A DNA stretch of 64,000 nucleotides from Azolla caroliniana (lineage: Eukaryota; Plantae; Polypodiophyta), in NCBI GenBank assembly GCA_043228905.1, contig JBHGNT010000011.1, forward strand, positions 15,624,001-15,688,000. Reading direction: 5' to 3'. Each line of letters opens with the position of its first letter. Position 1 is the stretch's first letter. The translations under genes were made by a program, and so were the position numbers. This document shows, in pieces, positions 19,101 through 61,976 of the stretch. Below the pieces are notes generated by a model, which ran no database searches, was not told the DNA's origin, and saw only the letters and a program-made list of their open reading frames with translations.

Positions 19101-19835
19101 AGTCTTTTGGGATCAAGACATCCATTAAAACATGCTTTTCAGTGCCTAGCTATTGATGCCAAACATGTTAAAAGTTTCCAAATATGGAAGAGTTTTCCAG
19201 CTCGCAACTTGTGAAATTTGAAAATTGATGGTTACAACATGTGAAAATTCAGTTGATTCTACGAAAGAATTGTGGATGCTTCAACCAGAAGGTTTCAAGC
19301 ATACAGCATGTGAAATATAAAAACTAACAATTTACAACATGTGAAGTTCGATTAATTCTATGAAAAAATTAAGGATGATCTCAAGTGCAAAGAGTTACAC
19401 AGCAGTGAATTATCTGATTTAAAGCAGTGTTCATGATCCATGATGTTTTCTGATACCGTTAAGCAGGAGACAAAGTGATATTGGAAGGAGAAACACACTT
19501 ACAATGAGACGACCAGATCGGAGGCTGAGAGAGGTTCGATCTTCTGGAGACACGGGGAGAAGCAGGTCGGATTGTTGGACAGATCGTCCACGAGCTCTGA
19601 TTCTGATTCTTCCAAAGTGGAAAGAAGACCTTTTCTGGCCGTGGAAGCCTCTAGAAGTAAGAATATGAAGAGATCGTAGGGGGAAAGCCATGTTTGTCGA
19701 TCCACAGAGAGAAAGAGAGAACCAGGAAGTTGTAGCAGTAGTAGTAGTAGTAGCAGCAGCAGCAGCAGCAGCAATTGGTGAAGAAGAAAAAGGAAGAGGA
19801 AGATGCGGCATGGTCACCAGAGAAGACGACGCCAT
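7150..19835 (-). CDS. Plastidial pyruvate kinase, beta-type subunit (PKp2/PKp3-like), about 12 exons
   Basis: S/T/A-rich transit peptide in exon 1 (19835-19503); in-frame GT-AG exons encode [98 protein letters not shown], and C-terminal [10 protein letters not shown] with stop at 7150-7152. Confidence 0.96.
8360..8600 (-). mobile_element. Degraded LINE (RTE-like) reverse transcriptase fragment, downstream part
   Basis: Minus strand reads [23 protein letters not shown] and a broken SIKQG..PLSPT motif. Confidence 0.75.
8601..12226 (-). mobile_element. Internally deleted Ty1/Copia LTR retrotransposon in a pyruvate kinase intron
   Basis: LTRs 11814-12226 and 8601-9493; PBS TGGTATCAGAGC (tRNA-iMet) at 11802-11813; PPT GAGAGGAGGG at 9494-9503; frameshifted gag with [14 protein letters not shown] knuckle, protease [11 protein letters not shown], RNase H GYSDADW..RKSTSGY..WKSKKQ..EAEY; integrase and most of RT absent; near-TSD ATTAC/ACTAC. 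Confidence 0.93.
8791..9219. mobile_element. Solo LTR of another family inserted into the Copia 3' LTR
   Basis: 429 bp with TG...CA termini, perfect 5-bp TSD GCCTA (8786-8790, 9220-9224); absent from the sister LTR, which reads GTATAGCCTATTTATAC. Confidence 0.92.
12227..12400 (-). mobile_element. Degraded LINE (RTE-like) RT fragment, upstream part
   Basis: Minus strand reads [26 protein letters not shown], the RT segment that normally precedes FVDF..AFD; contiguous with 8360-8600 if the Copia is removed. Confidence 0.65.
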
Positions 19836-23377: not shown

Positions 23378-23770
23378 TCAATCCTCTTCGTCGGGGCTAA
23401 AGAGAGCACCTGCATCGGGGTCGGGTGGGGGGTTGTCATCTTCCGGTACCATATCGTCATCAAAATCCGCGTCCGCCGCCGGAAAATCATCAAAATCTCC
23501 CGGAGGCGGGGTAGGCAAAGGATAATCATTAGAAACCGGATCCGGATGAGTCGTAGATTCTGTTGCTACCGACTCGGATGAAAAACCTCGTCTCCTCGTA
23601 GTCATGGTTCGCCAGAGGAGGACTGCTACAGAAGGAGGAGGAGGAGAAGGAGAAGGAGCGGGAACAGACCTTACATTATATGTACTCCTCTCGCAGTGAT
23701 AGCTCCGGGATAATGAAGAAGCAGAAGATTTCAGACGCAGAGCGCGAAGACTCCTGTAGAAGTTCGCCAT
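23378..23770 (-). CDS. Small 130-aa protein, organelle transit-peptide-like N-terminus and acidic/proline-rich tail; unknown family
   Basis: ATG in GCGATGGCG context, GC-rich relative to flanks, R/S/L-rich nearly acid-free N-terminus, C-terminus similar to ORF 39942-40361. Confidence 0.72.
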   Translation of the reverse strand: MANFYRSLRALRLKSSASSLSRSYHCERSTYNVRSVPAPSPSPPPPSVAVLLWRTMTTRRRGFSSESVATESTTHPDPVSNDYPLPTPPPGDFDDFPAADADFDDDMVPEDDNPPPDPDAGALFSPDEED

Positions 23771-23926
23771 CGCTGAGCTTCAGCGACCGTCCAAGCCTAT
23801 TCCGCTGTGTTCCTCTCTCTCTCTGTCAGCGTTTTCTTTCTTCTACATCGTCTTGCGGAACCTTCCAGAACCTCTGCTAAACCCTCGACATCGTTCGGAA
23901 TTTACAAATCTGACCCTCTCATTCAT

Positions 23927-24013
23927 AAAAAACTGAGAATTAGGGTTAATGTTCCACAAAAAACTGAGCATTACGGTTAATGTTCCACAAAAAACTGAAC
24001 ATTAGGGTTAATG
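23927..24013 (-). promoter_or_regulatory. 31-bp unit x ~3 carrying telo-box-like AACCCTAA upstream of ORF 23378-23770
   Basis: Unit AAAAAACTGAG(A/C)ATTAGGGTTAATGTTCCAC repeated in tandem; TTAGGGTT intact in units 1 and 3. Confidence 0.6.
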
Positions 24014-25453
24014 AAGTTTTTGACGATTCGTGTGGGGTTTCCATTTGTGTTTGTGTTTGAGTGCACACTTTTATCGAATCATCATTTCGATGTAGAACTA
24101 GGTTAGATTACATGGTCGATTAATTTGCTCTTCTTATGTGGATGTAGAAGCTCTTACTTATGTGTCGATGAAATCAACAAATATACGAGACAACAAGAAA
24201 AGCCTCCCGTTCATTATAGCCTACATTAATTGTTTAATTTGGTGCAATGCAACTTGAGCTAGTTTTTGACATCTTCCCGAGTTCGAGATAAGATGGCATA
24301 GAAGATCTTATCAGGACATCGGAGTGAATGATACATAAGAATAAGAAACATTTCGTGGTAAAACCTTGTAGTCGAGATCAAGAAGTTAATTTGGGGTAAC
24401 ATATGTTCATTGGGGCAAGTTTTAGCTTCCTACACAAAAAGAGGAGTTTGAAGCTCTAACTAGGCATTACAATAATAAGGCAATGATAATTGCATCCATA
24501 GTCTCATAGACTAGGTTAATTTATTGATTTTTGGCACCTTTTTTGTTCATAGAAATAGGTAGGCCTTGGGTTCATAAAGATATATGATAGAAGCCTTTTA
24601 AGGAGGTGTATTTGTTAACAATGCCTACATAAGGAGCAATTTCAGATATCAATATCACATATTGGAGATGTGTATATTCCAAATTTGTATGGATTGTGAC
24701 TTTAGAAATTAGGAGGCTCATAAGCTAAGCTATTGGTCAAAATAACAAAACAAAAAATGACATAGATTGCATGTAGAACGAGCTAGTGAGTAAACTTAAA
24801 GTGAGAGAAGTAGTTCTGTAAGGAGTGAACAACAATCATCAAGATTGGTAAAAATGGTAATTCTGCATATCTTCTCATAAGCATATGTACCTAGAGAGGT
24901 TTGTATGGATTAGGCATTTGATGATTGTTGGATGATTAGGATTCCACGCGTACTTACAGTAGTAGTTGCTTATCATTGTCCTAACTCACCCTTAGGGACC
25001 ATTATACTTCTTTTTGTAAAAATAAAGGTTCACCTTGGTATTAATGGAAAGATCATTGCACTTTTTTAAGAGTGTGGTTTTCCGGTAAAGACTTTAATCC
25101 GTAGATAGTACATGAAGTCTAGTCTCGTGAGAACTAGGATAATTTAGTAATAAGACCATGACAAACCTAGCATGTGTTGGGTAAAACAATAAGGAACATT
25201 CTCCTCAATCGCCATAAGGCAAGGTAATTGTTAGTTTAGCATATTGTTAAATGGATATGGTAAAGGATAGTTGGATGTTGTAGTGCATTGAAAGGGGAAG
25301 TTTGGTTGACAAAGAATATGGTGTTATAAAAGACATGTAGTGAAGATCAATGTTGCGCGGGGGAAACTTTTGAACTTTTTAAAACATGGCATGTATCATG
25401 TATGGGTGGGTGATGGGAATATTTACGACAAAGAAACTAGATGGCATAAAAGT

Positions 25454-25945
25454 TGTTACGGGCATGACCATATAATATCCTGTGGTAAGATTGTACCGTA
25501 GTATTCTATACACGTGTATAGAATACTACGGTACAATCTTGCCATGGGATATTATTTGGTTTCGCACATTATTGTAAAATAATTAGCATAAAAAACGTGT
25601 AGAATAATACGTATTCTAAGTATTCTAACTTCTTCTTTTTTTGATTGAATTTCTTTTGAAATGATAAATACTTGTTAAATACATAGAATACATCAAAATT
25701 TAAAAAACGGCAATTTTAAAACATAGAATACGTGTAGAATACTTCAAAGTATTCTAAAACGTAGAATACACGTTTTTTTAACAACTATGGTTTCACACTT
25801 AGCCTTAATGGATTGTCTTAATCCCAAGGATTAAAAGTAATCATTCCCTTCTTTACACTCTCGTTTAACACTCACACTTTATCCATATGTATAGAATACT
25901 ACGGTACAACGGGATATTATATGGTCATGCCTGTAGGCTGTAACA
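25454..25945. mobile_element. Rearranged Gypsy-LTR relic with U3-terminus sequence at both ends and a long palindrome
   Basis: Starts TGTTACGGGCATGACCATATAATATCC like the LTR at 38818; 25790-25935 is the reverse complement of ~38822-38970; ends TAACA; flanks AAAGT/GAAGT. Confidence 0.8.
25567..25789. mobile_element. Degenerate hAT-type MITE inside the LTR relic
   Basis: 8-bp near-TSD GTTTCGCA/GTTTCACA; termini CATTATTGTAAAA and TTTTAACAACTATG; repeated TAGAATAC/GTATTCTA subterminal motifs. Confidence 0.55.
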
Positions 25946-26129
25946 GAAGTGGTGTTAATTAAATGGCATATTGTTGGTGTTGGGTGACAATGACATTGGA
26001 GATTTTGGCAATTGATTCTCTCATTTTTTGATATAATGGGGTAAGTTACTTGTAAATTACTAGGCTACAACATAGAATCATGAGTCTAAACCCTTACTTT
26101 TACATATATTTACTACAAGATGTATCTTC

Positions 26130-28195
26130 TTCTTTTTTTCCCAGAAAAATTCTACTTCCATTAGTTAAGAAAAAGTACATAGAATAATATACAACTCATA
26201 TGTTACAAGCCACTTTGCAATGGCTACAAGAAAACATCATGTATAAATGAAGCAATAAAGCCTCATCACATAATTACTCGACAGCCTCCCATCAACATGA
26301 CCCTCACACAACCCACATTCAGCAAAGACACCCTCCAATCACTTCACAATTCAGCACCTACCTCTATGTTTGGTACCCTAGGAGGGAACAACCATCGGGG
26401 TGGCTAATATATCCACTTTGCATTGCCATCCACCATCTGTAACATCAGAGAACCTCTCCATTTAAGAAGGAAGCGGTACCTAGCTTATTCACTCGCATCA
26501 GAGGGCCCCTGAAGGCTGTCAAACTTACCTTGTAGCGTAGAAATCAGATTAAACCAAATCATCATTAAACTCTCAGCCGATGGGGTTCGCTTCCCGGTAA
26601 ACGACTCCTTACACCTTGATACCCCACTTGCCAAACAGTAAGGCCAACCACTAAAAACCAAACATCTAAGTATCGGTCCTATATGAAGAATGAATCTCCT
26701 TGAGCTGCAGGTTGAATTGTACCATTCACCACCTTTAAAGAAGGGCTATTCCATTCCACCCACGAAACCATGCAGCTGATTCAGTAGCTAACCAAACAAC
26801 GACTGCACTTGATACCTGAACTTCAACCCCACATTGAGCCAGAATTCTTAAGCTCCTCATCCAAACTTCTTGGGCTCGCGGGCAGCTCCATAAACAATGT
26901 GCGATGTCCTCCAAACTCGCTCCATAGGCCTTGGAGTTACTCATGCCACCCCTTTTCCCCAGCCACTCTCCGGTTGGAACATCCCGATGGGTGATTAGCC
27001 AAAAACCACCTTGACCCTCTCGGGGAGGGAAGAGTTCCATATCCTGCTCCTGGTTTTATCTACAAAGACCGAATCGATAACTACATGGGTCCATTTGTTG
27101 ACACACTTCTCACGGTGCAAGCATAAATGTCTCCCCAAGCGAGTTGAGAAGTCAAAGAAACCATGTGATTTACCTTGTTCATCCCTCCACATATATTCTG
27201 CAGGATCCCATTCTAAACACTCAAGGGGCTTGCCTTCAACTACATACAAGATCCAATCCTCCTCAACCTCATCGACTGATGGATTCACCTTCCATTTCTT
27301 ACCGTCTCGTGCCACAATTCTAATCGATGACCAACAAGCACTTGCAACTACAGATCCCAACTAGATGATCTTCCCATTCTTTCCTATACCCTTTGCATTG
27401 ATAACTTTTCCAACATCATCACATTGTCTAAACCATTCACCCTCATCCCCATTACTAATAGGAACAGAGTAAACAACTTTATCGACTAGATCAAGCATCT
27501 TCCTACCATTTCTAAACTTTATCGCATCTTCATACAATTTATCCCGATTACTAGGGAACAACTGCATCCAATTTGCCATTGATCGAATGTCAACACTGTG
27601 CAATATAGCCCACGACATACCCTTGCGTTGGCCAAGCATCTTCCCCTCGGTCGACTTTAAGGTCTCGTTCCACAATAGGGCTTGGTGCATCCATTCAACA
27701 TTAGTACTTGGACCTATACGCCTAAGATGCCCACGGAGCAAATCCCACACCTTCATCATTGACATACATGTGCGATCAGCCAACCAATTAGATTTCCTAA
27801 GATTTAAGTCCATACAAAAGAGCCACAATTTATGTGGCTTCCAATGCCCACCAAGTTGTGGACTCCAAAGGATGCTCCTATTAAAAATCAATGTTTTCCA
27901 TAACTCATTTCCAAGCAACAAGCTCCTTACCAATACCTTACATAGCAATGATTGACTTTGTATTCCAGGGTCGATCAATCCTAAACCCCCCTTACTTTTG
28001 AGAAGAATCAACGTAGACCATGACACTTTAGCTGCCACGTTGTCTTTCCTATTCCCAACCCATAGAAAGCCCCTAATACACGCTTTAACAATACGAATAG
28101 CATGCATGTCAAACATCCACACTGAGATCGCATGCCACATAGTAGACAAGAGCACATGTATAATTTTATACGCTACATTGGTGCATTGAACTAAC
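26130..28195 (-). mobile_element. 5'-truncated L1-type LINE (post-RT region and zinc-binding domain), with stops and frameshifts
   Basis: KVSWSTLILLKSKGGLGLID and EDIAHCLWSCPRAQEVW motifs typical of plant L1 ORF2 C-terminus; short T-run near 26133 may be the remnant tail. Ends approximate. Confidence 0.8.
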
Positions 28196-28299
28196 AATCC
28201 CCACACAACTCTCTCTCTCTCTCCCTCCCTCCCTCCCTCTCCCTCTCTATGCATTGATTAATTAGAACAAATCATTGCCACGCTTATAAAGGGAGAAGG

Positions 28300-28700
28300 C
28301 ATCATAGAAGTTGTCATTTGGGAAAATAGGCATCATGTTTTTTATGTATGCAAATGATATGGTACCTTGTGCAAATACTTTAGGAGATGTACGAAAGCTT
28401 ATGAGGGCATTGGAAGAGTTTTGTACGCATACAAAGTTGATTATCAATAGCTCTAAAACAAATATTACGTTTGTGAAGAGCCAAACTAAGGATAAACCAC
28501 ACATTATGTACAATAACAAGCCACAAGCTTTAAATACTCTGGCCTTGAAGTTCTTCAAATCATAGATGGAATGAATGTGTTGTTCACCGCCTGCATGTGG
28601 GAACGAGAACATGTTATGCATTTGAAAACACATGCAATCATGGAGAATTTAAGTGTGACACAATAGCATCCCTAAGTCCACTTGAAAATCATTTGAAGAA
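28300..28700 (+). mobile_element. RTE-like LINE RT fragment
   Basis: FMYANDMV (decayed YADD box) followed by ALEEFC..TKLIINSSKTNI. Confidence 0.7.
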
Positions 28701-29019
28701 TGTCCAAAAGCATAGAGACTTAGGTTTGTCAATTTCCAAGAGAAAGGTATCATAAACTCACTCAACTTGCATGGTTACTATTTATAACTCCACTGTGAGT
28801 ACCTAAATGTGATGATATCCAAAAACTAAGTTTTTATGAATGTCATGATACATCTAGAGTAGAAACCCCATTACACACCGAGGTTGACCTTGATTATTCA
28901 TTAACGTTATTCCCTTGAGTGAATTAAATCTTGTGTCAAAATAAACACACGTAATGTCTTCAATGCCAATGTAATAAAGTTGAGAGCCACAAGATAGTCA
29001 AGCTATTATGTTTATCTAT

Positions 29020-29260
29020 TGTAGATTCCAAACAACAAATGGTCAAGCATCTCGATGGATTTTGTCATGCATTTACTAACTTGAACATATGGGAAACGAT
29101 GTGATATGAGTTTGGGTTAATCAACTCATGAAAGCGGTCATTTAATTCCTACTAGAACCATTGGTAAGAACCACAAGTTGGCTCAAATGTTTGTGGAAAC
29201 AATGTACAATTTATGTAGTTCATTTGATGGAATTGTAAATGACACCGATCTCGATTCAAC
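29020..29260 (+). mobile_element. Decayed Gypsy integrase fragment
   Basis: Reads IPNNKWSSISMDFVMHL, matching [17 protein letters not shown] of the intact element. Confidence 0.7.
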
Positions 29261-30003
29261 TTTATTATTGCCTCAAGGACACGTTATGAATCAATAAAAT
29301 CATCAAGGAATGCTTTTCGTTGATGATGCTTTTTGTCTTTCATTATTTGATAGTGAACTATTGATCCATGTGGAGATATCTTATTTTCTATTATGTGTGT
29401 AACTTCTTCATACAAGTATTAGTGTTGAATTTTGGGACCGTAATTGGTTACTCAAACAAGTAACAAAAAGAGATTGATGATATCTCTATCATAACGTCAA
29501 TTTTCATCTATTCATAAACATGGTATAATGACTAACGTAAACTTATCAATCTTCTATACCATAGACTCATCCAATATATTATATATGAGATAGTAAAAGG
29601 TGGCATCTTATCAATTTATACCTTTCTTATAAAGTCTGTTTAGGTTGCTTCATGATAGAAAAGTGTTATTTATATTCATTAGTTAATATGAAATGTGGGG
29701 ATTCCCGATGCCAACAAAGTGTAAAAAACCTTGAGAAGAGTAGAATATTGATGGAGTCTTGTGTGAAGTGGGATGTATCATGTAAGGAAGAAGAAACACC
29801 CCCTTTAGTAAACCAATTAAAAACCACCAAATTCTAACTACATGATATAAGAGAATCAAATTAAATTGTTATTATTTTCCGTTGTGGTAGAGTAAATGAA
29901 AAGAAACTCATTTAGCATATACTGTTTGCACATCACTCAACCTTAGCAATTGAATTGCAATAAATCTTTAGGAACATCAATTGTTGAACCTATCCTCCAA
30001 AGA

Positions 30004-31678
30004 ATGGCTAGCTCTGGACCTAACATTGGCTCAAGTAGTACCACTACCACCACCACAACTATGCATGGTGGCAAATCAGGGATTCCTAGCTTTGCCACCC
30101 CTTGGATAGAACTAGGTAAACTTGAGGAGAGGGAGAAATGGCAAGCGCTCGCTATCAATCTTGTCGAGACGTCAATAACATCTGAGTTTCTAGACCTTAA
30201 GCGAGAAGTCGCAGAAACTTTACCGCCTCGACTCCCGGAGCTCAAATCCAAAATCAACGATAAAGTTGAGGAAGCCCAAGTCAATATATCTAAACTTATA
30301 TGTACGTACCTTTTTTAAGTTCCATAAATCCTTCCTTCTTCTTGTAGAAACAAATGTTGGTCTTACATGAAGAAATTTATTGTCTCTTCTTCAAATAAAG
30401 CCCACCATTTATTGTGATATTCTCATAAATGTTTTCAAATTGAAGTTATACATCGAGTATTTAAAATCTCACTAGATAAGTTGATCATGATTTTGCTTCA
30501 ATTAGGTTAACCCCCGTTTGTTCTAATGTCGCATGTAAATAATGTTTTCATTGTGGATTAAATGTGTCTATGAAATCAATGAGGTCAAATTGTTGTTTGT
30601 CAATCTACAAGTTAGATCTATGATGAATTTAATGAAGTTCATTCTTTTCTCATTCCAAATTACAGCGGAATATCGCAAATTGATATTTGTTGAGACCCCA
30701 TACATAGAAAAACAGGTATGAACAATCATCATGTTGTTATTGATACTTGACATAATTCAACATTAATACTATGTTTACTATGCATGAAAATGAAACGGAG
30801 TAGGCAATGATCCATGCATTACAATACCAAGCATGTGGATTCGAAGACAACATTCCAAGCATGATAGAAGGTTCCCCCCTATCCCTACTCCCTCTCTACA
30901 AAACATGAATGCACACAATATCTTTTTCATGTTTATGACACACGGGTTACAATTCAATCAACTTTTATCTCACCAAAACAATCCAATAACTTCAATTTGT
31001 ATTTGTACCCTAACAACTTTTAATTCATAATCTAGGAATTTTTGGAAGACGGTGACAAAAAGATTGTAGAAGCAATTCACATAAGCTTTCAAGACTTATT
31101 TAGCCAATTGCATGTGAACGAAATATTCAAACATTTCAAGAATGATGCAAATAAATAGACATATATTGGTGTACCATATCATAAAAGCATGCATATATTG
31201 ATATAGATTTATATAGAACAAGCAATAAGTTATTATTACAAATGTGTAAAGTTGTGACATTCGTGTCGACAATTCAACTAATACAACATTAGGGCTATGT
31301 ATGTAATAAACATATAATCTCTTATGCGAATAAATAAGCATAGCTCGCCACATTAAACATACCATGTGTGTGTGTGTGTACTTGTGTTTATACATGCAAG
31401 GACGAAGGGGCAAACATTATGTTTTGTACACCCATGCAAGTTCCTTGGCTATACAAGAATCTATGTTTTTTTTGTCTCTGCGTACATGTTCTACATACAT
31501 CCTATTTATGATGTATATCTTTGTTGAGGTTTTCATGTTGCACAACATATGCATGCACACACATCTAATTTGTCTTTGACGATGTTTTCAATAATTAATT
31601 TTTTCCATGCTAGATTTCACGGCAACGGTTACAGAGGAGATAATGATGGAAGAACCTACAAATGGAAAGAGAACTTAA
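30004..31678 (+). CDS. Spliced orphan gene, 3 or 4 exons, with in-frame TAG near the end of exon 3
   Basis: Exons 30004-30301, 30666-30715, 31036-31168, 31614-31678; all GT-AG with compatible phases (1,0,1); TAG at 31156-31158. Confidence 0.68.
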
Positions 31679-32179
31679 AACCTTCTGCCTTCCTCTATTA
31701 TTTCAATAATTGAGTGATACATTCTCGCAATATTATGACTTGGAAATCACGAGTCGATGCAAGGCCTCATTGTTTACATTCAAATTTCATGAAGTTTTTA
31801 AGGCATTAATGATAACGATATATTATCATGTGTAATAGATCAAAGGTCATAACTACATATTAAAACAAAATGTATGCTCGGTTTTACATTATTGATATAT
31901 TCGATAAAACTATCACTTAATCAGCTTAACATGTCAATTGATTGTAGCTTTTAACATATGCAACAAGACGTCACACGTGTTAAAACACATATTGAAAGCA
32001 TTGCCATCGCACATAGTAAAAGCAAACTTCACACATCCCATATATTACTACGGTTTACCTATAATTTAGTTTATATTGCTTGAATGGAACTCTAAAATTC
32101 AAAAGTATAAATATAGGTCGTGAATTTGGTTTCTGGGCAATGAATGATCCCAAAATTTGGGTTGTGTCTATACATTACA

Positions 32180-32390
32180 GGGGAAAACTTTGAGATACCC
32201 CCAAATGTTTTGTTTATCTCCCCAAATGCCCCAAACTATTTGTTGTTTCCCCAAATACCCTTGGTTCATCCCCCTCTCGTGCAATTATATGGTCAATTCG
32301 TCTTCGTGTTTCTCCCTTTCGAGGTTAACTAAGGGTATATGGAGAGATAACTAAAACTCTAGAGATTTAGTGAAATAAACAGAAAGTCAC
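32180..32390. mobile_element. Probable degenerate Mutator-like MITE
   Basis: Begins GGGGAAAACTTTGAGATACCCCC with repeated CAAATRCCCC motifs like the 62367 MITE; only a partial inverted partner at ~32326-32370. Confidence 0.4.
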
Positions 32391-33774
32391 GTGCATTTCA
32401 AAATGAATATAGCACTAGTGCCATACCATCTACCTTAAAAAATAAATGATTTTAAAGCCTTCTTGGACATATTAGTTGATATGTCATCATTTTGTTCATA
32501 TACACATAAGGGTCTAATTTTTTAGTTAGGTTCACAATAAATAGTTCAACCATAATATCATTTATAATTAACTCATTCTTTTCTTTAGTAATGATGTTAT
32601 AATTTCTCTTTCCACAGGCGAAGATTGAAACAATAGCGCCTAAAAAGGCATGCTCATAAACCTAGGAGGCAAGTCGCTTGACCTCTTTCCTCCACTCACG
32701 AAGAGTTGTGAGCAAATATACTATGATAGAGCTTCCGTTTTGTTAGCTTATGGATAACCTTAAATATAAACAGAAAAATCCTAATAAATTTCATTGCAAT
32801 TTCTAGAAAATTTCATCCTCACCTAAAGAAAGTATAATTCATAAACTATGAATCTCGTGAACATTATCACGCATGCTTAGTTCAAGGCCAATGAGTAGAT
32901 GGGTCCTTGACCTCACCATATTACTTCTATGAAAAAATCAACTAATATGTAAATGAAAGAAACTATTTAAATCACAGATTAAACAATTGTATACATTTCA
33001 AAAACACTTCGTAATTAGTTTGACTACCATGCATACTAACAAACTGCCGCTAAATTTTATAGCTTCACCATGGTAACTTTTCCCACGGCACATAGAGAGG
33101 AATGTATGTATAGATGAATGGTAATTGCAATAAAGTTGGCCGGTTGGTGGAAAACCACGTTAGCTTATGCTACTCCATTACAATCATTTGTCAATCAAAA
33201 AGCAAAAGGGAAAAAATACAATTAGTGCAAAACTTTCATGTGCATGCGTCCATCATAGGTTCTTGTAGAGTTTTATATGATAAAAATAATCTAGATGAAC
33301 CCAATTCCATGAAGAATCTATGTTCTCCTGTTATGTGATGCAATTGGTGTATTTTGCTCGAGGAGATAAAAAATTGGCTTCCTTAACACCTATAGCTCAT
33401 TCTTACTTCATTGAAGGATCTAACGCACCAATTGAATATGTCGACCATTGTCAATTAGAAACATCAACTTGTTTAAAGGCTTCTAAAAGAACTTTGAGAT
33501 GTGAGCAAAATTCCATTGCTTTACACACACTTGATTTGAAAGAACTTGCAATTAGCATTTATATTATACTCTACTTACCTCACCATAACGTAGACCTCAA
33601 TCATCGACTCCTTTTCTCATAACCTCATCAATGTCAACATCCATGTTTTATGAAAATTCCCTTCATTCTAATAGCCACATTGCCCATAATTGATTTCATA
33701 ACAAAAAACTCTACCTAGTTTTAGTGTTCGCATGCGAAGTTTTTAAAGATTGGCCCTATAAAATTTGACAACAC

Positions 33775-36700
33775 TGTTACGGGATATTATATGGTCATGC
33801 CCGTCATATATGTTCTTTTAAAAAAACATATATGATCAATTGCCTCGCATATCTCTTATACGCATCAAACATTAAGCATTCGAGAAGAGCAACTTACTTG
33901 GTTGGCTCAAGTGTTTAATGTATTTGTTCTCGAGGTCTCGAGTTCAAATATGACCAAGACCATACAACATCCTTGATACATATGACTATAACACATGTTT
34001 AGACTTAAGGTCTAAGTGCACCTCGGGGTCCTCGTAATAGGACTTAAAGAGCCGAAACCACATATGTGGGCACAGAAACATAGTTATTGTTAACATTTTT
34101 TTCGTGTATAAACTATTCATGACGCGAACATACATGGTTGAGCCTCGGGGAGCCGCCATGAAAAAAATCGATATAGAGATCAGGGAAAGGCATTCATTTG
34201 TCACCCCCATGGTTTTTAAAACACCTCTGTGTTACCATAGTAACCTGATCTTGAACCTCATCTCATACGTCTAGAGGGGTATTGACGTGAGATCATGATA
34301 TCGATTAATGTTTGCCCATGATATGTTTACACCACAACAAGATGTTATGACTATTTGTCTGACCTTATCTTATTTCTTTGCCAGAAATAATCATTCAATG
34401 GCTCAGAATAACGACCCGATGCCCTCCGCTCAAGCGGAAAGACCTCAAGGAAATCCTCCTGGGACAATGTCCATTGAGGCGTATATTTTACAAGTACAAC
34501 ATTTCCTTAGTTCAACCGCGCAGCAGTTGACCGAATTTCGGCAATCTCAAAGTGCTCTCGAGGCACGAGTCATTAGTCTCCAAAATGAGATTAATAGACC
34601 TGATGAGCGTCAGGGTGAACCATCATTTGTCGTAAAGCCATTTACGGGAGATAAAAAGGAAAGAACCGAAGAAGCAATCTGCACGTGGCTGGGCCGATGG
34701 GAGTCTCATTTTGAGCTCTATCCCACGCCAGATAGTACGAAGATTGCATATGTTGGCCGAGAACTAGGGGGTAAGGCCGCCGCTTGGTGGCGTGGGCTCC
34801 GAACTTTGGGGAGATTGCCCGAGACCTGGACAGACTTTGTCACAGTTTTCAAGGGTCAATTTCTACAACCTCCCTCTCGAACCGAGGCAGCACAAGCTTT
34901 AATGAACCTCTCTAGCAGGAAGTTTTCCTCGCTAGAAGATTATGTCCACCATGCTAGAACCCAAATCCAAAAATCGGGTCTAGAAGGGGACAATTGGTTA
35001 ATAGCTTGTTTTGTCAATGGCATCCCCAATTCGGACTATCACTGGATAGTGCACGATAAGGATCCAAAATCCTTCGAAGAGGCCGTTGAGATAGTTCTTC
35101 GCTATCAACGCACTTCGAAGAAGGACCATAACAAACCCAACGAAGCGCCCGAGACTAAGCAGTCACAATTCGTTGGGAAACGCAAGACACCCAACGAATT
35201 CATGGATCGCGATTATAAGCGACAACATCCTTTTTGCGTATTCTGCAAAAAGAAGGGTCATACAAAAGAGCAATGTCGTAAGCTCCAACGAAAAGAGCAC
35301 GACGCCAAACCTAAAGCTACAGACCATAAAGGTCAGATTCCTAATGTCCTTCAGGTCTATACACATCATTTGAGTAATTGTCAATGTTCTTTCCCTCATT
35401 ATGTATTGGGTCCCAATGATTTACTACGTGCAAACGGGTATATCAATGGATCTCCCGTACAATTTTTATTTGATTCGGGAAGCTCACACAATTTTGTGAA
35501 TGATCGTTTGGTACAGATATGGGGAATCCAACCCACCGTAAGTGATCACACCTACACGGTGCACTTGGCTGATGGAAGAGTACAACACATCAACGGGGCG
35601 ATTCATTCTTTAGGAATTTCTATTGATACCTATATAGAGGAAGTAGACTTCCATGTAATGAATCTTAGTACCACCGATGTAATACTGGGTTATCCCTGGT
35701 TTTATAATAAAAGCTCTTCTTTATTTATTGATTGGGTTCGCCATTCCATTTCTTTTGTACTCAACGATTGTACGCATTTTATTCAATGTGTAACAAAACA
35801 ATCCCTCTCGATTGTTTCCTCGTGTCCATCAATATCCGAGTTGTCTTGTTCTACGTTATTTTATTGTGTACTTGATCCGGACATTCACGTTTACAATATC
35901 GATAATGTCTCGGGTCAATTAACATATTTTGAACAAAAACAACTTGATGAAATCGTAAACGATTTTCGTGATGTTTTTCCGAGTGAACTACCCGATGGTT
36001 TACCTCCTAAACGTAATATAGACCATCGTATAGATATTGTACCTGGCATTGCACCCATTAGTATACCTCCGTATCGCCTAAGTCGATCTGAAGAGGATGA
36101 GGTAGCTAAGCAACTTAAGGACTATTTACGAATGGGTTATATACGTTATAGTAAATCTCCATGGGGTGCACCAGTTCTCTTGGTTAAAAAGAAAGAGGGC
36201 ACATGGCGTATGTGTATTAATTACCGACGCTTGAATAAAGTGACGATCAAGAATTCGTACCCATTGCCCCGGGCTGACGATCTAATTGACCGTCTCCAGG
36301 GAGCTCGGTATTTTACGAAACTTGATCTCCGTACTGGCTACCATCAAATACGAATAAGTGAGGACGATGTTCCTAAAACAGCATTTCGTACGCGCTACGG
36401 CCATTATGAGTTTTTGGTTATGCCTTTTGGTTTGACCAATGCTCCGGCTACATTTCAACAAGAAATGAATGACATTTTCCGAGAACAACTTGGAAAATTT
36501 GTCGTTATCTTCTTAGATGATATTTTAGTTTATAGCCGTACATTACAAGAACATGCTAGACATGTCCGCTTTGTTTTACAAATATTGCGTGACAAACAAT
36601 TTTACGCGAAGATCTCAAAATGTGAGTTCTTCAAGAAATCAATTACTTATCTTGGACATCTCATAACCGAACGAGGAGTTGAAATTGATCCTTCTCGCAT

Positions 36701-39282
36701 CGAGAAAATCAAGCTTTGGCCCACTCTTCGGAATATTCGAGAAGTTCGCTCATTCCTTGGTTTTGTCGGATTTTTGCGAAAATCTCTTCGTAATTACTCA
36801 CAATTGACGACGCCGTTTACTGATCTTCTAAAAGGTCAAACGCGTAAGTCTACAAAACCTATTGTGTGGAATGCTACACTAGACCTCGCCTTTAAGGAAC
36901 TCAAGGACTTGGTATGCAAGGCTCCTTCACTTCTTTTACCCGATCCTTCAAAACCTTTTGAGGTTGAAACCGACGCAAGCGATTATGCTATAGGTGCTGT
37001 CTTGTATCAAGATGGTAAACCAATAGCATTCGAGAGTAAGAAACTTGATTCTGCTCAATGTCGGTATACCGTTCAAGAAAAGGAATTATTTGCGGTTATA
37101 CATGCGCTCAAAACATGGCGCCATTATCTTTATGGAAATCGCTTTGTGGTAACTACGGACCACGAGTCCTTGAAATATTTTTGTGACCAACAAGACCTGA
37201 AAGGTCGTAAGGCACGATGGGCTGATCTCATCCAGGACTTTGATTTTTCCATACGATATCGTAAAGGTTCCATGAATACTGTCGCTGATGCACTAAGTCG
37301 CATCCGTGAAGTTAACATGCTTAGCTTCACTGAAATAACATCAGATCTTTATGATCACCTTCGAGGAAAGTATCCTGATGACAATTATTTTGCAAAATAC
37401 TGGGCAAGAGTCGAGTCTGGAACAGACACCACCACACCCTCGAAGGAATACTTCCACATTGCTAACGGTCTGCTCTACCGTAATGGGAAGGTTTGTGTTC
37501 CAGATTTACCTGAGGTCAAAAAGAGAATTCTTTTTGAATGCCATGATGCACCCTCAGCAGGGCACCCTGGAATACATCGTACACTCGTTCTCATCTCCAC
37601 TCAATTTTATTGGCCTAAGATGCGTCCTGACATACATAGCTATGTGACTAAATGTCACCAATGTCAGGTTAACAAAGCCGAGCGACTTAAAGCCGCAGGA
37701 CTTTTACATCCCTTAGACATTCCCAATAATAAGTGGGAAAGTATATCCATGGATTTTATTGTTAGCCTTCCTCGCACCCAAAAAGGTCATGATGCCATAT
37801 GGGTTGTGGTTGCCAGACTAACTAAAATGGCCAGATTTATTGCTACTAAAACCACGGTAACAGCTCCTGAATTGGCTTACCAATTCGTTGATGAGTTATT
37901 TCGTTTTTACGGGTTACCGATGGATATCGTGAGTGACCGAGATCCGAAGTTTACTAGTGACTTCTGGACGCAAGTCTTTAAGAAGTTAGAAACTACGTTG
38001 AGCATGAGCTCCACGGATCATCCTCAATCCGATGGACAGACAGAACGAGTAAATCAAATTATTGAGGACATGCTTCGAGCATACGTTGGTGCAAAACCAA
38101 CAAAATGGGAACGTTACCTCCCAATTTTGGAGTTTGCTTATAACAGCTCCAAGTATACGTCGACGGGATATAGTCCTTTTATGTTGATGTATGGATTTCA
38201 GCCACGAGCCCCGATTGATGTTAATATACATCATGATGAGTTGCGAAGTACGCAAAACTTTCTTCGGGATATGCAAGATATGTTGCATATTGCACGGGAT
38301 AATATAAAAACAGCTCAAGATAGAGCGCGTTTTTATGCCGATCATCACAGGCAACCTCGTGTATTCAGCCCTGGACAGAAGGTATTTTTACGTGTACCTC
38401 ACAATTCTAAGACATTGTCTACGGGTAAGTGCGCTAAGTTAGCCCCACGGTTTTGTGGACCTTTTACAGTCCTCAAACGCATTGGATCATCAGCCTATCG
38501 TCTCGCTCTTCCCGATGGTGTTGGAATCCATCCAGTCTTTCATGTAAGTCGTCTAAAAGAACTTCTAGGTTCTGGCGACAATACAGTTACAACTGAAACT
38601 CTGGTTACTTCTGAAGATTTATCTTCTAAACCACACGTACCAGAAAGAATTCTCGATGTTAAAACAAAAAAATTACGTGCTAAGGAAATCCGAGAATTTA
38701 AAATAAAATGGATGGATAAATCAATCAAAGATGCCACATGGGAACGCGAAACGACTCTAAGAACTAACTTCCCTAACTTTCCATTGCAAGAGTGCAATGT
38801 TTTAAAGAGGGGGAGTATGTTACGGGCATGACCATATAATATCCCGTGGTGAGAATTGTCGTAGTATTCTATACACGTGGATAAGTGTGAGGGTTAAACA
38901 AAGAGTCTAAAGAAGGGGAGGATTACTTTTAATCCTCGGGATTGAGACAACCCATGAGGCCAAGTGTGAACATGGCTGGGGGCCTTGAGAATTACTATAA
39001 ATAAGAGGCCTAGCTACCCTCATTGGGGCATGCATTGACTACGTCGAGACTCTGTCCGTGAGTGGAACGACTCTTGTAGCAAGCGCGCTATCGTCCAGGT
39101 ACGACTCGACGCCAAGGCGGTGGTATGGGACGCCGATCGAGGCTCGAGTCCGTCTCGATCCCTTCGCTCGGGGGTGGTCGGGTGGATCGGCACCCTTCTT
39201 TCTCTCTTTTCTCTCTATTCTTTCTAGATCTATCATTGATATATCCTTATTTTATGCTTACTTTAGTACCTAATCTCTAATA
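33775..39282 (+). mobile_element. Ty3/Gypsy chromovirus with intact polyprotein, full 3' LTR and truncated 5' LTR
   Basis: Perfect TSD AACAC (33770-33774, 39283-39287); PPT AAAGAGGGGGAGTA before 3' LTR 38818-39282 (TGTTA...TAATA); 5' end TGTTACGGG stub only. Confidence 0.92.
34308..38831 (+). CDS. Gypsy gag-pol polyprotein: gag, zinc knuckle, protease, RT, RNase H, integrase, chromodomain (start may be the ATG at 34398)
   Basis: [14 protein letters not shown]; [10 protein letters not shown]; [32 protein letters not shown]; [13 protein letters not shown]; [20 protein letters not shown]; ERILD..FKIKW..ATWE. One uninterrupted frame. Confidence 0.97.
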
Positions 39283-39748
39283 AACACCAAGAATGAAAGC
39301 AATAACTCATGAATCAGCAATAATAATGTCACCCCACGTCACTAATAACATGAAAGTCACAAATAAAACCGATAAAACCAAATGTCAACTCAACCCCATC
39401 TTCCTAGATGTTGCTCTTGAGTATTGTATTGATTTCCTTCTTCTTACATTTTCTGTCATAGTTCACTACAACCCAGATCTCGCCCCCAACACGAAACTTG
39501 ACATCTCAAAGTTTTCAACATTTTGTAATGATATGCGAGAATGGAATGGGCTCGGATGGTTGCCATGTGCGTCACCATGGGGGACATATTCGGTGTCCAG
39601 TGGACGTAATGATATCTATCACTCGAGAAAATTTGTTTTGGGGCCGATTCCTATGGACCAAAGAATTGTAGGGGCATTTCTAGAAATTTCTTTAATAATA
39701 AATTTAACACAGCCTTTCTTTCCTTGAAACTTAAAACCCTCTCCCCAT

Positions 39749-39890
39749 AAACCCTAAAAACCACTGTAAACAGAAACCATCTTAAAGAAGAAGAAGAAGA
39801 AGAAGAAGAAGAGGAAGAGGGACCACGAAACCCTAACAGTCAGGAAGAAGAAGAAGAGGGACCACGAAACCCTAACAGTCAGGAAGAAGC
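39749..39890 (+). promoter_or_regulatory. Three telo-boxes (AAACCCTAA), two within a 39-bp tandem duplication, plus (GAA)n, upstream of ORF 39942
   Basis: AAACCCTAA at 39749, 39828 and 39867; GAAGAGGG(G)ACCACGAAACCCTAACAGTCAGGAAGAAG duplicated. Confidence 0.6.
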
Positions 39891-39941
39891 AGCAGCAGAA
39901 AGAGAGATAAAGAGACACACGCACAGAAGGAGGCGCACGAC

Positions 39942-40361
39942 ATGGTTCGTGTGAAGATCAGTGCGAGCAATATCTCCCAGAAGTGTCGCTTCTTCTTCGT
40001 CACCACTTCCCCCCATTCCCATCGGTTGCTACTCTCTCGACCTTCGTCGCCATCTCAATACCTGCAGAAACCACCCTCCTTCTCTTCCTCCCTTTCCTTG
40101 CTCGTTCGTCCCTGGTCTTCCGCTTCCACTGCTCCCTCCTCGTCTGTCTCTGAAGCGAGATCGAGCTCCAGCTATAAAGCTTCTCCTTCTCCTTCTCCTT
40201 CTCCTTCTCCTTCTCCATCTCCTTCGGAAATGGAGTCTTCCAAGCTTCCTCCGGATTATGACGATTGTGTATTCGACGCAGATGATAAAGATTACAAAGG
40301 AGAACCAGAGAGCGATCCTGAAGAAACTTACCTCTTCAGTCCTTCTGATAGCGAGAATTAG
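39942..40361 (+). CDS. Small 139-aa protein, transit-peptide-like N-terminus, (SP)n linker, acidic tail; probable paralog of 23378-23770
   Basis: ATG in GACATGG context; first ~70 residues S/R-rich with no acidic residues; tail PPDYDD..DADD..DPEETYLFSPSDSEN. Confidence 0.72.
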   Translation: MVRVKISASNISQKCRFFFVTTSPHSHRLLLSRPSSPSQYLQKPPSFSSSLSLLVRPWSSASTAPSSSVSEARSSSSYKASPSPSPSPSPSPSPSEMESSKLPPDYDDCVFDADDKDYKGEPESDPEETYLFSPSDSEN

Positions 40362-42470: not shown

Positions 42471-44002
42471 TCAACAAATGAAAGGTGCTTTGGCATTCTC
42501 ATCAGAGCAATAAAGCCCTGGTTGTTGAGTAAATCCTTGCTTTTTGAGGATCTCCCTTATTTTGCTAACAAGCTCATAGTTAGTGATAGAACCATGGTTT
42601 TGGGAGAGCACAATTTGAATAGCATTACTCATGGCTCCATATCCTTCATTCCCTAATTGTCCAGAAGCATCAGCTGAAGTCTCATGTGATTGGCACCCAC
42701 TTACCAACACACCCATATCTGCCCTATACTTCATTGTTTTTTTATTATTCTTGCGATTTACATTAGCAACAGCTTTCTTTGGCCCGACTACATGATCATG
42801 ACTATGACTGCTACTTTTGTCCTTGTTCTTTTCATTTGCTAACACTCCTCTCATAAATATCTTACCTTCTGAGGTTCGATCCTGGGGATGTATATCAATT
42901 ATTGATGCACGGATGTTATGTACATACATGTCCTTCCCTGTCTTTTGTTTTAAGATGGTCATCAATGTGGAGAGGGGCAGAGCTCTACTCTTCACATTGT
43001 ATTTCTCGTTACCCATGTAGGCAATGTTCTGGAAATGTTCATCATGTGCTATGTATTGATGGTCTAGATGAATACCACGTTTCTGAAGTTTCTCACGCAT
43101 TTTGTTATGAATCTTGTGAAAGGTCAACTCATCGTCACTTGACGAATTATCACAATCACGATCCACATCACCATTACTCATTTCAAGATCTCTCTTTCCC
43201 TTACCTTTAGATGGTTTTTTTGCACCACCATTTTCCTTATGTTTCCTGGCAGGTTTCTTTATCGTATGAGCACTCACTAATTCTGGAAGTGAACTTTCGC
43301 CAATCTGTTCTTTCTCATTTTCGATTAAACCTCCGCTATGGCATGAGTCTGAGATCATAGTGAGGCCAACACCCAAGGGCAATTTGTCAACAACCTCTCT
43401 GAAGTCATCATCTGCAAATGTTGGATCAATCAATGGTCAAACGAATAGGACGTAAGAGGATTGATCTCACTAGGGCACAATAAAATTTAGACACTTTCCA
43501 ATGTAGGAAAATGTCCACTCTTCACCATTACAATATTCAACATGATGAACTCTTGAGCCTCTCTTTTTAGCTCATAAGAAGTTTTTGATATCCTTTTATT
43601 TCAGAAAAGAGGCTACCCTGCTTACACTTTCAAGTTCAATCAACTCTGAGAGCTTTTGGAAGTGAGGTGGGTGGAGCCTAGATGTCTGACAAGATTAGGA
43701 CTTTCTTTGCCCACATTTCCAAACCACAATATGAACTCAATTACAAAACACTTCCCGCAGTACACACAAATGTTTTCTTTGTTCCAATATGATGTTATCG
43801 CGTCCGACGAGGATAACAAATTACTATATGTCAGTCTTTGTTGGATGGATGTAATAAAACCTATCCATCCATTAATCTCTACTATGACAAGTCCACAGGT
43901 AACCAGTACACAATAAATCCATCCATCCATCTAGTCATTCATTGATCCATCCATCTATCGATCTTTTCATTTCTTCTTGATGTGAATGGATTGAGCACAT
44001 AA

Positions 44003-44043
<41 letters not shown>

Positions 44044-44429
44044 TAAGGTTAGCGCAGGAAACCAAGAAGATTGGGCTTACCAGAGATGAGGTTCATGTCA
44101 CATGGAACGATGCATTCATCAAAACCAGTGGTATCAGGGTCACCAGGCTCGACAGGTAAGCGGACACCATGGCCACTATAGTGGAAGAAGAGAACATCAC
44201 CACTTTTTGAACCTGAGACAAGGTCATGGAGGGCTTGTTTGATGTTGAAACCTGTTGGTTTTAAACCTGAAGAACTATCTGTGTCCACGAGGATTGAGAT
44301 GTCAGTCTCATTGAACCCAAACCGATCCATGAGGCTTTGTTTGATTCGCTTCACATCAGTAATGCACCCACTGAGCTCTGCCTCAGTGCCCGGATAGTTG
44401 CAACCTACTAGCACTGCTTTTTTTGCCAT
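42471..44429 (-). CDS. Type II metacaspase, two coding exons
   Basis: Exons 44429-44081 and 43411-42471 (phase-1 GT-AG intron); [15 protein letters not shown], catalytic HYSGHG and [10 protein letters not shown], linker KSRALPLS, p10 [26 protein letters not shown]. Confidence 0.96.
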
Positions 44430-45485
44430 ATCTCTCAATATATTCTTTTACTCTCTTTGGGTTTAAATTGGGATTTGTAGACCTTGTTCTTGTTCTTTTT
44501 TCTGTGTAAAACTAGGATTTTCAGATCAGATAATTTAAGGATAGCAAAACTTCTTCTTCTTTCTGGATGTGTAAAATTAGGTTTTATTGATCAACTTTGG
44601 AAGAGTTTTTTGGAATTAGCGAATAGTATTCTTCTTTCTTCTGTGCTACAAAATTACAGTTTGTGGATTCAGGGAGCTAACATTTTTCTTCTGCTACTCG
44701 TCCTCATTGTGTGTGTGTGTGTGAAAGTAGGGTTTTCAGATGAGCTTTTGCATGTGTGAAGCCCACTCAGGCATTTTTTTATTATTCTTTCCATTTCTAC
44801 TTCTTCGTTATTCCTTTTCTATCTTTCTTTCTTCTTCTTCTTCCCGTGTGTGGCATCAGGGGTTAGAATTTAGCTGATCATCATCTTCTTTCCTCTTGTT
44901 CTTCCTCACGCATTCTTCTTCTTCTTCTTCTTCTTCTTCTTCTTCTTCTTTATTTTCTACTCCTTTCTTCTTTTAACTTGTTTCCATTATAACAGAAACA
45001 AAACTATAACAGAAACAAAGGGGGGAGGACAACATGCGATCTTACATTCAAAGGGTCGATACGAAATACGAATGAGGGGATGGAACCCAAACGGTGGGGA
45101 GCCAACCTGATGTTTCTTCTTCAAAATTAAACCTGCACAGACAAAAAAGGTAAAAAAGACCCGGAATTAAATCGACAGAGAAGTAGAAATGGGAAGGGGA
45201 ACAGAGAGGAAGGGAACCATGGATGGAATGAATGAATTGATGGTAAAATGCAGAGAGAGAGGAAGGAAACAGAGGGAAGGAGAGGGCGATCGATGGTCAC
45301 GACGCTCGCTCCCTCCCTCCCCTCCGGTGTGAACCGCCCCTTAAATCTCTTTCTCCACTTCCTCCCTCCCTCTCCGGTGTGAACTACCCCTTAAATCTCT
45401 TTCTCCTCTTTTGGTTATTTCCTTGCCATACCCCTCCCTCACTCTCTCTCTTCCTCTTTTTTAAATTTTTTATCACAATTACCTT

Positions 45486-57100: not shown

Positions 57101-58803
57101 AAACATGGCATTGGCGCTTGATTGCTTTCCAAGAGTCACTGTGATTCATACATCTAGACGTTTTATGGGGCAAATGTATATTCCCACAATCAACTGGTTA
57201 ATGGCAATCATATGTGTGCTTATCATAGCTGGCTTCAAGAGTACAGACTTTATCGCTCATGCTTTTGGTAAGGAAATATTTGATTTTCTTTTTATACTGC
57301 ACAGTGAAAGCTATTGTAAACCCTATCTATATATTCCAGGACAGAAGTAGTATTCTCTTATTTGTTAGGTAGTCACGGATTTTGGTAGAATTGGTAGAAT
57401 AGTTAAGTTTTGTCTTTTTATGTTCGTGTAAGTCTGTCTCCAAATCTAGAGGCATAATAAGTTAAGGAAAGCAATTTTCAGGATATCAATCTATTTTGCT
57501 ACACAAAGTTCACATCCATTTAATCTATTGTTAAAAACTGCTAGCACAACTTGTATCAATTTTCTTACAGGAAATCATATTGATTGTCTTACACAAGATC
57601 TACTCTGCTTGAAATATGTCATTAATATTTGCTAACAATATCTCATTGATATATTCACAACTAAAAGACCTATTAGTTCATGCCATTGTACCATGCATGT
57701 AAAAAATATATTGTTTACTAGTAGTTTTAATTAACTTTTGGTGCTGTGAATTTTTAGGCATCGCAGTTCTAGGTGACATGCTCATTACAACTGCCTTTGC
57801 TACATTGATTATGATCATGATATGGAAAACTCGATTGGTATTGTCTCTTACTTTCTTGGTCATTGTTGGAGGTGTGGAGTTGATATACCTTCTTGCAGTT
57901 CTTTTGAAAGTATCTGAAGCTGGTTGGGTCACCTTGGTTCTAGCCATATCTCTTGTCAGCATAATGTATATATGGCATTATGGTACCCGTATGAAATATC
58001 AAAGCGAAGTGGATCAAAGAATCTCAATGGATTATATGCTAGAGTTGGGGCCCAATCTGGGGACTGTAAGAGTAGAAGGTGTTGGGTTGCTTTATAACGA
58101 GCTCATTCAAGGAGTGCCCGCTATATTTGGATATTTCATGAAAAAACTCCCGGCAATACACTCGACCATAGTATTTGTTTGCATAAAGTATATAAATGTA
58201 CCTGCCGTACCACAGTCACAAAGGTTTGTCTTTCGGCGTGTCTGTCCCCGGGATTACCATATATTTCGTTGTGTTGCAAGGTATGGATATAAAGATGTAA
58301 GGAAAGAGGACCATAACTTATTTGAGAAGCTGCTTTTGAAGAGCCTCAAGACTTTTATACGAAGAGAGGCTCAAGAATACGCGTTAGAATTTGGGAGCTT
58401 TGAAAGGCTTTCGGATAATATCGATGATGACATTTCTTCACTGGTTGGTAGAAATGGACAAGATTTAGGTGAACTAATCCAACCTTTATTATCAAGGAAT
58501 TTATCCGGAAATATCGAGGACATTGATATATCTGAATCTCTTCATTCTCTACATTGTAACGAAGTTGTGCTTGATGAGATTGCTTCAACGGAGATTTCCT
58601 TTTTGAAGCAGGCAAAGAAAAGTGGTGTGGTTTATCTCATTGGACATGCTGCTGTGAGAGCCAAGAAGGATTCATGGTTCTTTAGGAAACTTGTCATAAA
58701 TTATTTCTATGCATTTCTATCAAGAAATTGTAGGGCAACTTCAGATATACTGAATGTTCCTCAAACGAACCGCTTACAGGTTGGAATGACGTACATGGTT
58801 TAG
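51181..58803 (+). CDS. KUP/HAK/KT potassium transporter, cluster III-like (KUP5/7/12 type), 9 exons, divergent
   Basis: Exons about 51181-51461, 52156-52384, 53378-53626, 53936-53987, 54079-54339, 54419-54471, 56631-56745, 57013-57267, 57758-58803; acidic N-terminus with [60 protein letters not shown], terminal QVGMTYMV. Confidence 0.94.
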
Positions 58804-61538: not shown

Positions 61539-61976
61539 TGTTGAATATGGGATTGGCCACAACCGATTGATTACCAAGCACAAACGAGAAAGACAAAAAA
61601 ACTGAAATAACAGAAGATGATGCACTGACACAAAGACACAATATATTAACGTGGAAACCCTGAAATGGGAAAAGCCACGAGAGCCCACAGACTCCGAACA
61701 GAATCACCATATCGAGAGGAAATACACAAAACAAGAATCTCAAGGCAACGACCTTGAGTTCTTCTTCGTCTGACAGACAATTGCAGAGTTACAACTCTCT
61801 CTCTCTCTCACACACACACTCTCTCTCTTACACTCTAGTTACAGAGGCAACTAAACACTATAACCTTTTACAACAACAATGATGATCGTCATACCTAACT
61901 ACTTGCCCTAAATATATTTATAGAAATCTTTAAAAATTCGTGCTCAAGTATCCCTCCAATCATAGTTGTAATGAAT
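61539..61976 (-). mobile_element. LTR-like segment of an unrelated family
   Basis: Minus strand has TATAAATA, GA/GT runs, CGTGGCTTTTCCC..GGGTTTCCACGTT and ends TTCAACA exactly where the Gypsy integrase sequence stops. Confidence 0.5.

Follow-up and report, generated by a model that had tools for sequence, protein, structure and literature searches.

A probable pair of undescribed acidic mitochondrial microproteins encoded in Azolla caroliniana

Two small genes, here called A and B, were analysed in a stretch of 64,000 nucleotides from the fern Azolla caroliniana (GenBank assembly GCA_043228905.1, contig JBHGNT010000011.1, positions 15,624,001 to 15,688,000; hereafter the window). They probably encode a real, undescribed pair of acidic mitochondrial microproteins, of a kind (small, organelle-targeted, disordered motif proteins) that is itself already known. 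Our overall model, in which both products are mitochondrial acidic motif-peptides acting on a basic partner, is given a probability of about 0.5. That A and B are genuine protein-coding genes under selection appears close to certain because of the selection signature described below. The features of the two genes and their predicted products are as follows.

23378..23770, minus strand: gene A, intronless open reading frame (ORF) of 130 amino acids (aa), isoelectric point (pI) about 4.4
23582..23770, minus strand: predicted mitochondrial presequence of A, aa 1-63, net charge +10, with the -3R site RGF↓SS (the arrow marks the putative cut)
23381..23581, minus strand: predicted mature peptide of A, 67 aa, 7.1 kDa, net charge -21
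23393..23422, minus strand: terminal motif of A, DPDAGALFSP, aa 117-126, 4 residues short of the stop
23630..23658, minus strand: (TCTCCT)n-like microsatellite encoding the Pro/Ser run of A, 4 codons shorter in the orthologue
39942..40361, plus strand: gene B, intronless ORF of 139 aa, pI about 5.1
39942..40115, plus strand: predicted presequence of B, aa 1-58, net charge +8, without Asp or Glu, ending in RPW↓SS
40116..40358, plus strand: predicted mature peptide of B, 81 aa, 8.5 kDa, net charge -12
40314..40343, plus strand: terminal motif of B, DPEETYLFSP, aa 125-134, 5 residues short of the stop
40180..40225, plus strand: (TCTCCT)n microsatellite encoding the PSPSP run of B, 6 codons shorter in the orthologue
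39749..39874, plus strand: three telo-boxes (AAACCCTA) upstream of B, at -193, -114 and -75 from the start codon

Coding status, constraint and predicted targeting

Orthologues of both genes were found on short metagenome contigs: P0001 for A (contigs L001, L010 and L011) and P0002 for B (contigs L002-L009), each 84% identical over the full length. The flanks of these contigs align as well, at 80-91%, and sample ERZ1034395 contains both orthologues. Start and stop codons are conserved in both genes, and all indels in the coding regions are multiples of three, whereas the 3' flank of A shows indels of 1 and 2 nt. The last 49 codons of A (aa 82-130) have accumulated five silent changes and no replacement (proportion of replacement changes, pN, 0; of silent changes, pS, 0.16; Fisher p 3e-4), and the last 44 codons of B (aa 96-139; 40227-40358) three silent changes and no replacement (pN 0, pS 0.13, Fisher p 5e-3). 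The joint probability that all eight tail changes are silent ranges from 2e-6 to 6e-5 with the transition bias assumed, the higher value corresponding to a 10-fold bias. Protein-level selection, claimed earlier in a sequence-only reading of this DNA, is thereby borne out: the tails are invariant and altered only silently, and the tail motif is kept in homologues, P0001 and P0002 having tails identical to those of A and B. Two things temper this result, namely that the comparison involves one other species at approximately 10-15% silent-site divergence, and that one contig (P0004) carries LFST in place of LFSP. The latter is a single base at 1.7x coverage in an otherwise identical sequence, probably a sequencing error. 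Retention of each single residue in a low-complexity tail makes bulk charge an insufficient explanation for the constraint and argues for sequence-specific binding.

The two divergent ORFs had been reported in the sequence-only reading, and re-translation of the window reproduced their coordinates, translations and orientation. Each ATG is preceded by an upstream in-frame stop. Residues 1-60 contain one Asp or Glu in A and none in B, together with 10 (A) and 8 (B) Arg/Lys, in agreement with the earlier description of R/S-rich, acid-poor N-termini, and the last 45 residues contain 17 (A) and 16 (B) Asp or Glu. Of the 48 ORFs in the window that begin with ATG and span 80 aa or longer, only A and B start basic and acid-free and end strongly acidic, and no further paralogue was found within the window. 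An overlapping 134-aa frame over B was considered and rejected: it lacks an ATG, and it is in the frame of B that the tail substitutions are silent.

A cleavable targeting peptide on both proteins is supported by a switch in evolutionary rate. Upstream of the predicted cuts, A and B together show 19 replacements in 116 codons (pN/pS 0.83), and downstream of them 5 in 142 (pN/pS 0.11; p 8e-5), the pattern of a free presequence and a constrained mature part that characterizes mitochondrial proteins of the -3R class. In A, the presequence differs from that of the orthologue by 13 replacements over 59 codons, plus in-frame indels. The plant -3R consensus is RX(F/Y/I/L)↓(S/A)(S/T) (PMC4986872), and the combination of this motif with a basic, acid-free N-terminus (net charge +6 to +10) is present in A and in its orthologue, which has RSF↓AS at the site matching RGF↓SS; B is a near match. 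The first 11 residues of A are amphipathic, with a moment of 0.62-0.70. The rate switch is stronger evidence of cleavage than the -3R motif, which by itself proves little. The earlier proposal of presequence-like N-termini is therefore retained in a sharper form, as predicted cleavable peptides with mitochondria favoured over plastids; the N-terminal features fit mitochondria better, and mitochondrial or dual targeting seems likely.

Telo-boxes are common in the promoters of cytosolic and mitochondrial ribosomal proteins and depleted from those of plastid ones (PMC3229498). The copy at -75 of B is conserved in the orthologue, and the window as a whole has a telo-box background of 0.12 per 600 bp. 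The telo-boxes of B provide minor support for the mitochondrial reading, since A is without any. Immediately upstream of A, at 23924-24016, there are three tandem 31-bp repeats with telo-box-like cores (TAACCCTA, minus strand), present in fewer copies in the orthologue. The region 23770-23951, also upstream of A, is 91% conserved with positions 732-942 of L010 and contains three indels of 6, 21 and 3 nt, all multiples of three; no conserved upstream ORF was seen there.

Several observations weigh against this view of the N-termini. In B, the site RPW↓SS is only a near match to the consensus, with a non-canonical W, and the amphipathicity of the N-terminus is modest (0.43-0.47). A -3R-type motif turns up in approximately 15% of shuffled N-termini, the boundary of the rate switch was picked by the motif and could truly lie some residues away, and the upstream region of A lacks a canonical telo-box. 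The predicted mature peptides are hydrophilic (grand average of hydropathy, GRAVY, about -1.1). AlphaFold2 run without an alignment gave no fold (pLDDT 48, pTM 0.12) and the ESM Atlas model had a pTM of 0.10, which may be taken as weak evidence of disorder, a low pLDDT from a single sequence being a poor indicator.

Relationship between A and B

Common descent of A and B rests on a statistically thin signal. BLASTP aligns the two proteins with an E value of 0.013, shuffling of the tails gives p 0.003, and the global alignment score compared with local-composition shuffles gives p 0.001-0.046 in all four cross-comparisons. Taken with their adjacency, similar size, lack of introns and end-anchored motif, these values lead us to consider paralogy rather likely. 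At identical A/B residues the codon is shared in 7 of 36 cases for the window pair and in 13 of 36 for the orthologue pair, so silent sites look saturated. The terminal motif carries an AGY-type Ser in both proteins. The sequence-only reading had noted a shared DP..LFSP motif in which five of six codons differ, and this is correct for the window; in the orthologues only two of six differ, so the higher figure reflects recent silent changes. The codon pattern consequently speaks more for a shared ancestry of the motif than for selection. The PSPSP linker, previously offered as a shared trait, fails as an argument, since the run is a hexamer microsatellite of variable length, situated upstream of the predicted cut in A but downstream of it in B, and such a run is no evidence of homology. 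The claim of old paralogues is thus retained as probable but statistically weak, its linker and codon arguments not holding as originally put.

The opposite view, that A and B are real organelle-targeted genes but unrelated, with a likeness due to composition, a coincidental LFSP and no family behind it, we regard as unlikely. It draws on most of what tells against homology: hhalign assigns the pair a probability of 2.6% (E 0.018), the terminal-motif shuffle gives p of only about 0.01 for what is a weak overall similarity, two alternative tail alignments are possible, several aligned serines differ in codon class, non-coding DNA shows no similarity beyond the microsatellite, the BLASTP E value is just 0.013, and the pair was picked after the fact. 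Composition alone does not readily account for the local-composition shuffles, which are significant in four of four comparisons, nor for two neighbouring, intronless genes of equal size sharing an end-anchored motif in a window with no third such ORF. If A and B did arise by duplication, the saturated silent sites and the absence of residual non-coding similarity would place that event much earlier than the split of the two species.

Relatives, known systems and alternative explanations

Neither protein, nor either tail, matched a family in Pfam (E 0.1 and 10) or NCBIfam. A word-indexed search of 5.8 billion proteins with A, B and their joint alignment, and an exhaustive hidden Markov model search of 1.84 billion representatives with a tail profile, each returned P0001 and P0002 only; P0001 and P0004 served as A queries in part of the searches. 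Beyond known orthologues, translated metagenome scans yielded just two further copies of the A orthologue, and translated scans of viral contigs and prokaryotic genomes revealed no relative of A or B, so there is no sign of a horizontal origin. The sole match in PDB, TAX1BP1 (E 0.3-0.7), is at chance level. In the ESM Atlas, B had no usable match, and A matched two Streptophyta clusters (129 and 147 aa) at 0.80 and 0.78, values that shuffled proteins reach one third of the time, leaving these clusters a lead at chance level. Such proteins were not found described in literature searches. The earlier statement that the family was not recognised holds across Pfam, NCBIfam, PDB and two large protein collections, beyond the orthologues. 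The score of A against B is approximately 19 bits, far under the reporting level of billion-sequence searches; a relative no closer than A and B are to each other would be invisible to these searches, and confinement to one genus is accordingly not shown.

That the two ORFs belong to longer spliced genes, as their first exons or 5' remnants, or are non-coding frames or derived from transposable elements (TEs), is scarcely credible. The surroundings are TE-rich and A contains a weak donor-like site at 23412, but the codons past this site show silent changes alone and encode the shared motif, the stops are conserved, B is without an in-frame donor, and neither gene is associated with a TE domain, a repeat copy or a terminal repeat. 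It is also very improbable, slightly more so than the LEA_3 origin considered below, that A and B are nuclear or cytosolic acidic microproteins, with a loose basic N-terminus or an internal start at Met56 of A and Met97 of B. DSS1/Sem1 and CSNAP/SMAP1 are short D/E-rich disordered peptides whose Phe anchors bind basic grooves; these proteins lack a presequence and reside in the nucleus or cytosol. The F-D-D-F-P-A segment of A recalls DSS1 but is not in B, and acidic stretches with spaced F/Y/L recall both DSS1 and activation domains. Moreover, the internal Met residues are conserved and gene callers began one copy at the internal Met of A (P0003). Set against this, neither DSS1/Sem1 nor CSNAP/SMAP gave a Pfam or PDB match at E 10, the 55-95 codons upstream remain open in both species and carry in-frame indels, constraint starts near the -3R site, well upstream of Met97 of B, and the basic cluster of A is not conserved (RRR versus GRR). 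A stretch of A (D-F-D-D-D-hydrophobic-P) is like the C-terminal acidic tip of bacterial single-stranded DNA-binding protein, but it is internal, there is no OB fold, and no bacterial or viral relative was found. CP12, a plastid acidic disordered linker of GAPDH and PRK, shares with A and B a precursor of about 130 aa, an acidic disordered mature peptide and a C-terminal docking segment; A and B are without its Cys pairs (0 Cys in the mature part of A, 1 in that of B), have no Pfam match to it, and their targeting looks mitochondrial. Plastid- or dual-targeted acidic regulators, such as CP12-like linkers of stromal enzymes, are hence a rather improbable alternative. S-rich, acid-free N-termini would suit transit peptides too, LEA5 is targeted to both organelles, and the RX(F/L)↓(S/A) motif is common to dual-targeted proteins (PMC4986872). 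However, Arg/Lys within the first 12 residues and the -3R sites favour mitochondria, as does the depletion of telo-boxes from plastid ribosomal-protein promoters.

The closest functional analogue is LEA3/LEA5 (SAG21), which may act similarly without A and B being members of that family. LEA5 goes to both organelles, binds the RNA helicase RH22 and modulates organellar translation (PMC9244843). Features that A and B share with LEA_3 proteins of plants (PMC7410210, PMC9244843) are small size, disorder and a mitochondrial presequence (the last two predicted for A and B), a variable spacer and a short conserved Pro-Asp-Pro/aromatic/Pro motif, whereas the DAELR and EDVMP motifs of LEA_3 are lacking and the mature parts are far more acidic. 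One could suppose that A and B are highly derived LEA_3 proteins (LEA5/SAG21), stress-linked and mitochondrial, in which the Trp has disappeared and the W-motif has changed its spacing, but we consider this very unlikely. The overall architecture is alike; where LEA_3 proteins have an RRG[YF]-type cut motif, which is a general -3R motif, A has RRGF↓SS and B RPW↓SS; there are partial matches (D-P..aromatic-x-P, and P-D-P-x-x-G in A), and size and GRAVY fall inside the range of non-angiosperm LEA3. The Trp at position 1 of the W-motif is by definition 100% conserved (PMC7410210) but is absent from both mature tails. Over the spacing P3-D4-P5-x-T7-G8-x-aromatic10-x-P12, the best agreement is 4 of 8 positions in A and 3 of 8 in B and needs a one-residue insertion between P5 and P12, the Pfam LEA_3 profile gave no match at E 0.1 or 10, and the pI of A (4.4) is below the range of 5-10 reported for LEA3 (PMC7410210).

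Genomic setting, proposed mechanism and implications

The gene content of the window, with a chromodomain Ty3 element, a copia fragment, a metacaspase and a KUP potassium transporter, identifies it as plant DNA. The 16 kb between A and B had been described as mostly TE DNA; approximately 9.5 of 16.2 kb is indeed TE-like or recently inserted, but a probable three-exon gene is also found there (plus strand; 30004-30301, 30666-30715 and 31614-~31645; about 125 aa), whose GT-AG junctions keep the frame. Its exon 1, which alone was searched, has no Pfam or PDB match. About 4 kb between the genes (24300-28360) is missing from the orthologous contig L010. This segment contains inverted long terminal repeat (LTR) fragments related to the Ty3 LTR at 25454-25935, including a 94-nt palindrome (25467-25560), and at 26.7-28.25 kb a decayed LINE-like stretch judged by eye and without a Pfam match. 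The chromodomain Ty3/gypsy element (33775-39300, plus strand, about 5.5 kb) has an uninterrupted gag-pol ORF of 1507 aa (34308-38831) and a 3' LTR from ~38818, with no matching 5' LTR and just a 32-nt inverted match at 33779-33810. This 3' LTR ends approximately 650 bp before B, and homology with L003 begins just past it. With these insertions lying between them, A and B were probably once closer together.

Immediately downstream of B lies a metacaspase gene (Peptidase_C14; 42471-44438, minus strand), followed by a KUP/HAK potassium transporter gene (51181-58803, plus strand), both useful synteny anchors. A first exon of a gene with a plastid-type transit peptide (19431-19835, minus strand) is located 3.5 kb downstream of A, and another first exon (4531-4836, minus strand) may resemble the PEX1 N-terminus. 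At 60153-62727, long nested inverted repeats (arms of 48-135 nt, 83-94%) surround Ty3-related sequence, which suggests a rearranged or fold-back element.

In the model that we propose, A and B would have arisen as old paralogues via a local inverted duplication. Each precursor would carry a fast-evolving mitochondrial presequence of 58-63 aa, cut by MPP/ICP55 at the -3R site as the motif and the rate switch suggest, and after import into the mitochondrial matrix would act as a free acidic disordered peptide. The product would be a disordered polyanion of 7-8.5 kDa, composed of a Ser/Pro spacer and an invariant tail of 44-49 aa with two hydrophobic-anchored motifs, P-x-D-[FY]-D-D..F and D-P-[DE]-x3-L-F-S-P. 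Phe, Tyr and Leu anchors amid acidic residues and Pro look like short linear motifs, and a specific protein-docking role is somewhat favoured. Polyanions of this type usually bind basic nucleic-acid-binding surfaces. As the most likely action, the motifs would dock on such a surface in a protein of the matrix, for instance an RNA helicase or a ribosomal, PPR or nucleoid protein, where the acidic residues would compete with RNA or DNA. The sequence-only reading had likewise put forward a terminal docking motif and a possible adaptor, inhibitor or nucleic-acid-mimic role, which stays inferential. This habit of polyanions and the precedent of LEA5 acting on helicase RH22 favour a peptide that would serve organellar gene expression as an adaptor or chaperone or act as its inhibitor, but assignment of the partner to that process is tentative, being drawn by analogy. 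An extended version, in which A and B form a fern-restricted family, the DPxxxxLFSP tail is a new docking motif and the peptides are RNA/DNA mimics gating an organellar helicase, ribosome or PPR editing, is doubtful; if true, it would represent a class of trans-acting regulator undescribed for plant mitochondria.

Catalogues of small disordered proteins from plant organelles are poor, and most such proteins elude homology search. A fully conserved low-complexity tail behind a freely drifting presequence, in two orphan genes, points to a specific partner, and the predicted mature peptides are short enough for synthesis and use as bait, which makes their function directly testable. Should the partner lie outside mitochondrial translation or RNA processing, A and B would be an ordinary pair of lineage-restricted orphan genes. 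If it belongs to these processes, they would represent a second class of small regulators beside LEA5, in a lineage of little-studied organellar biology.

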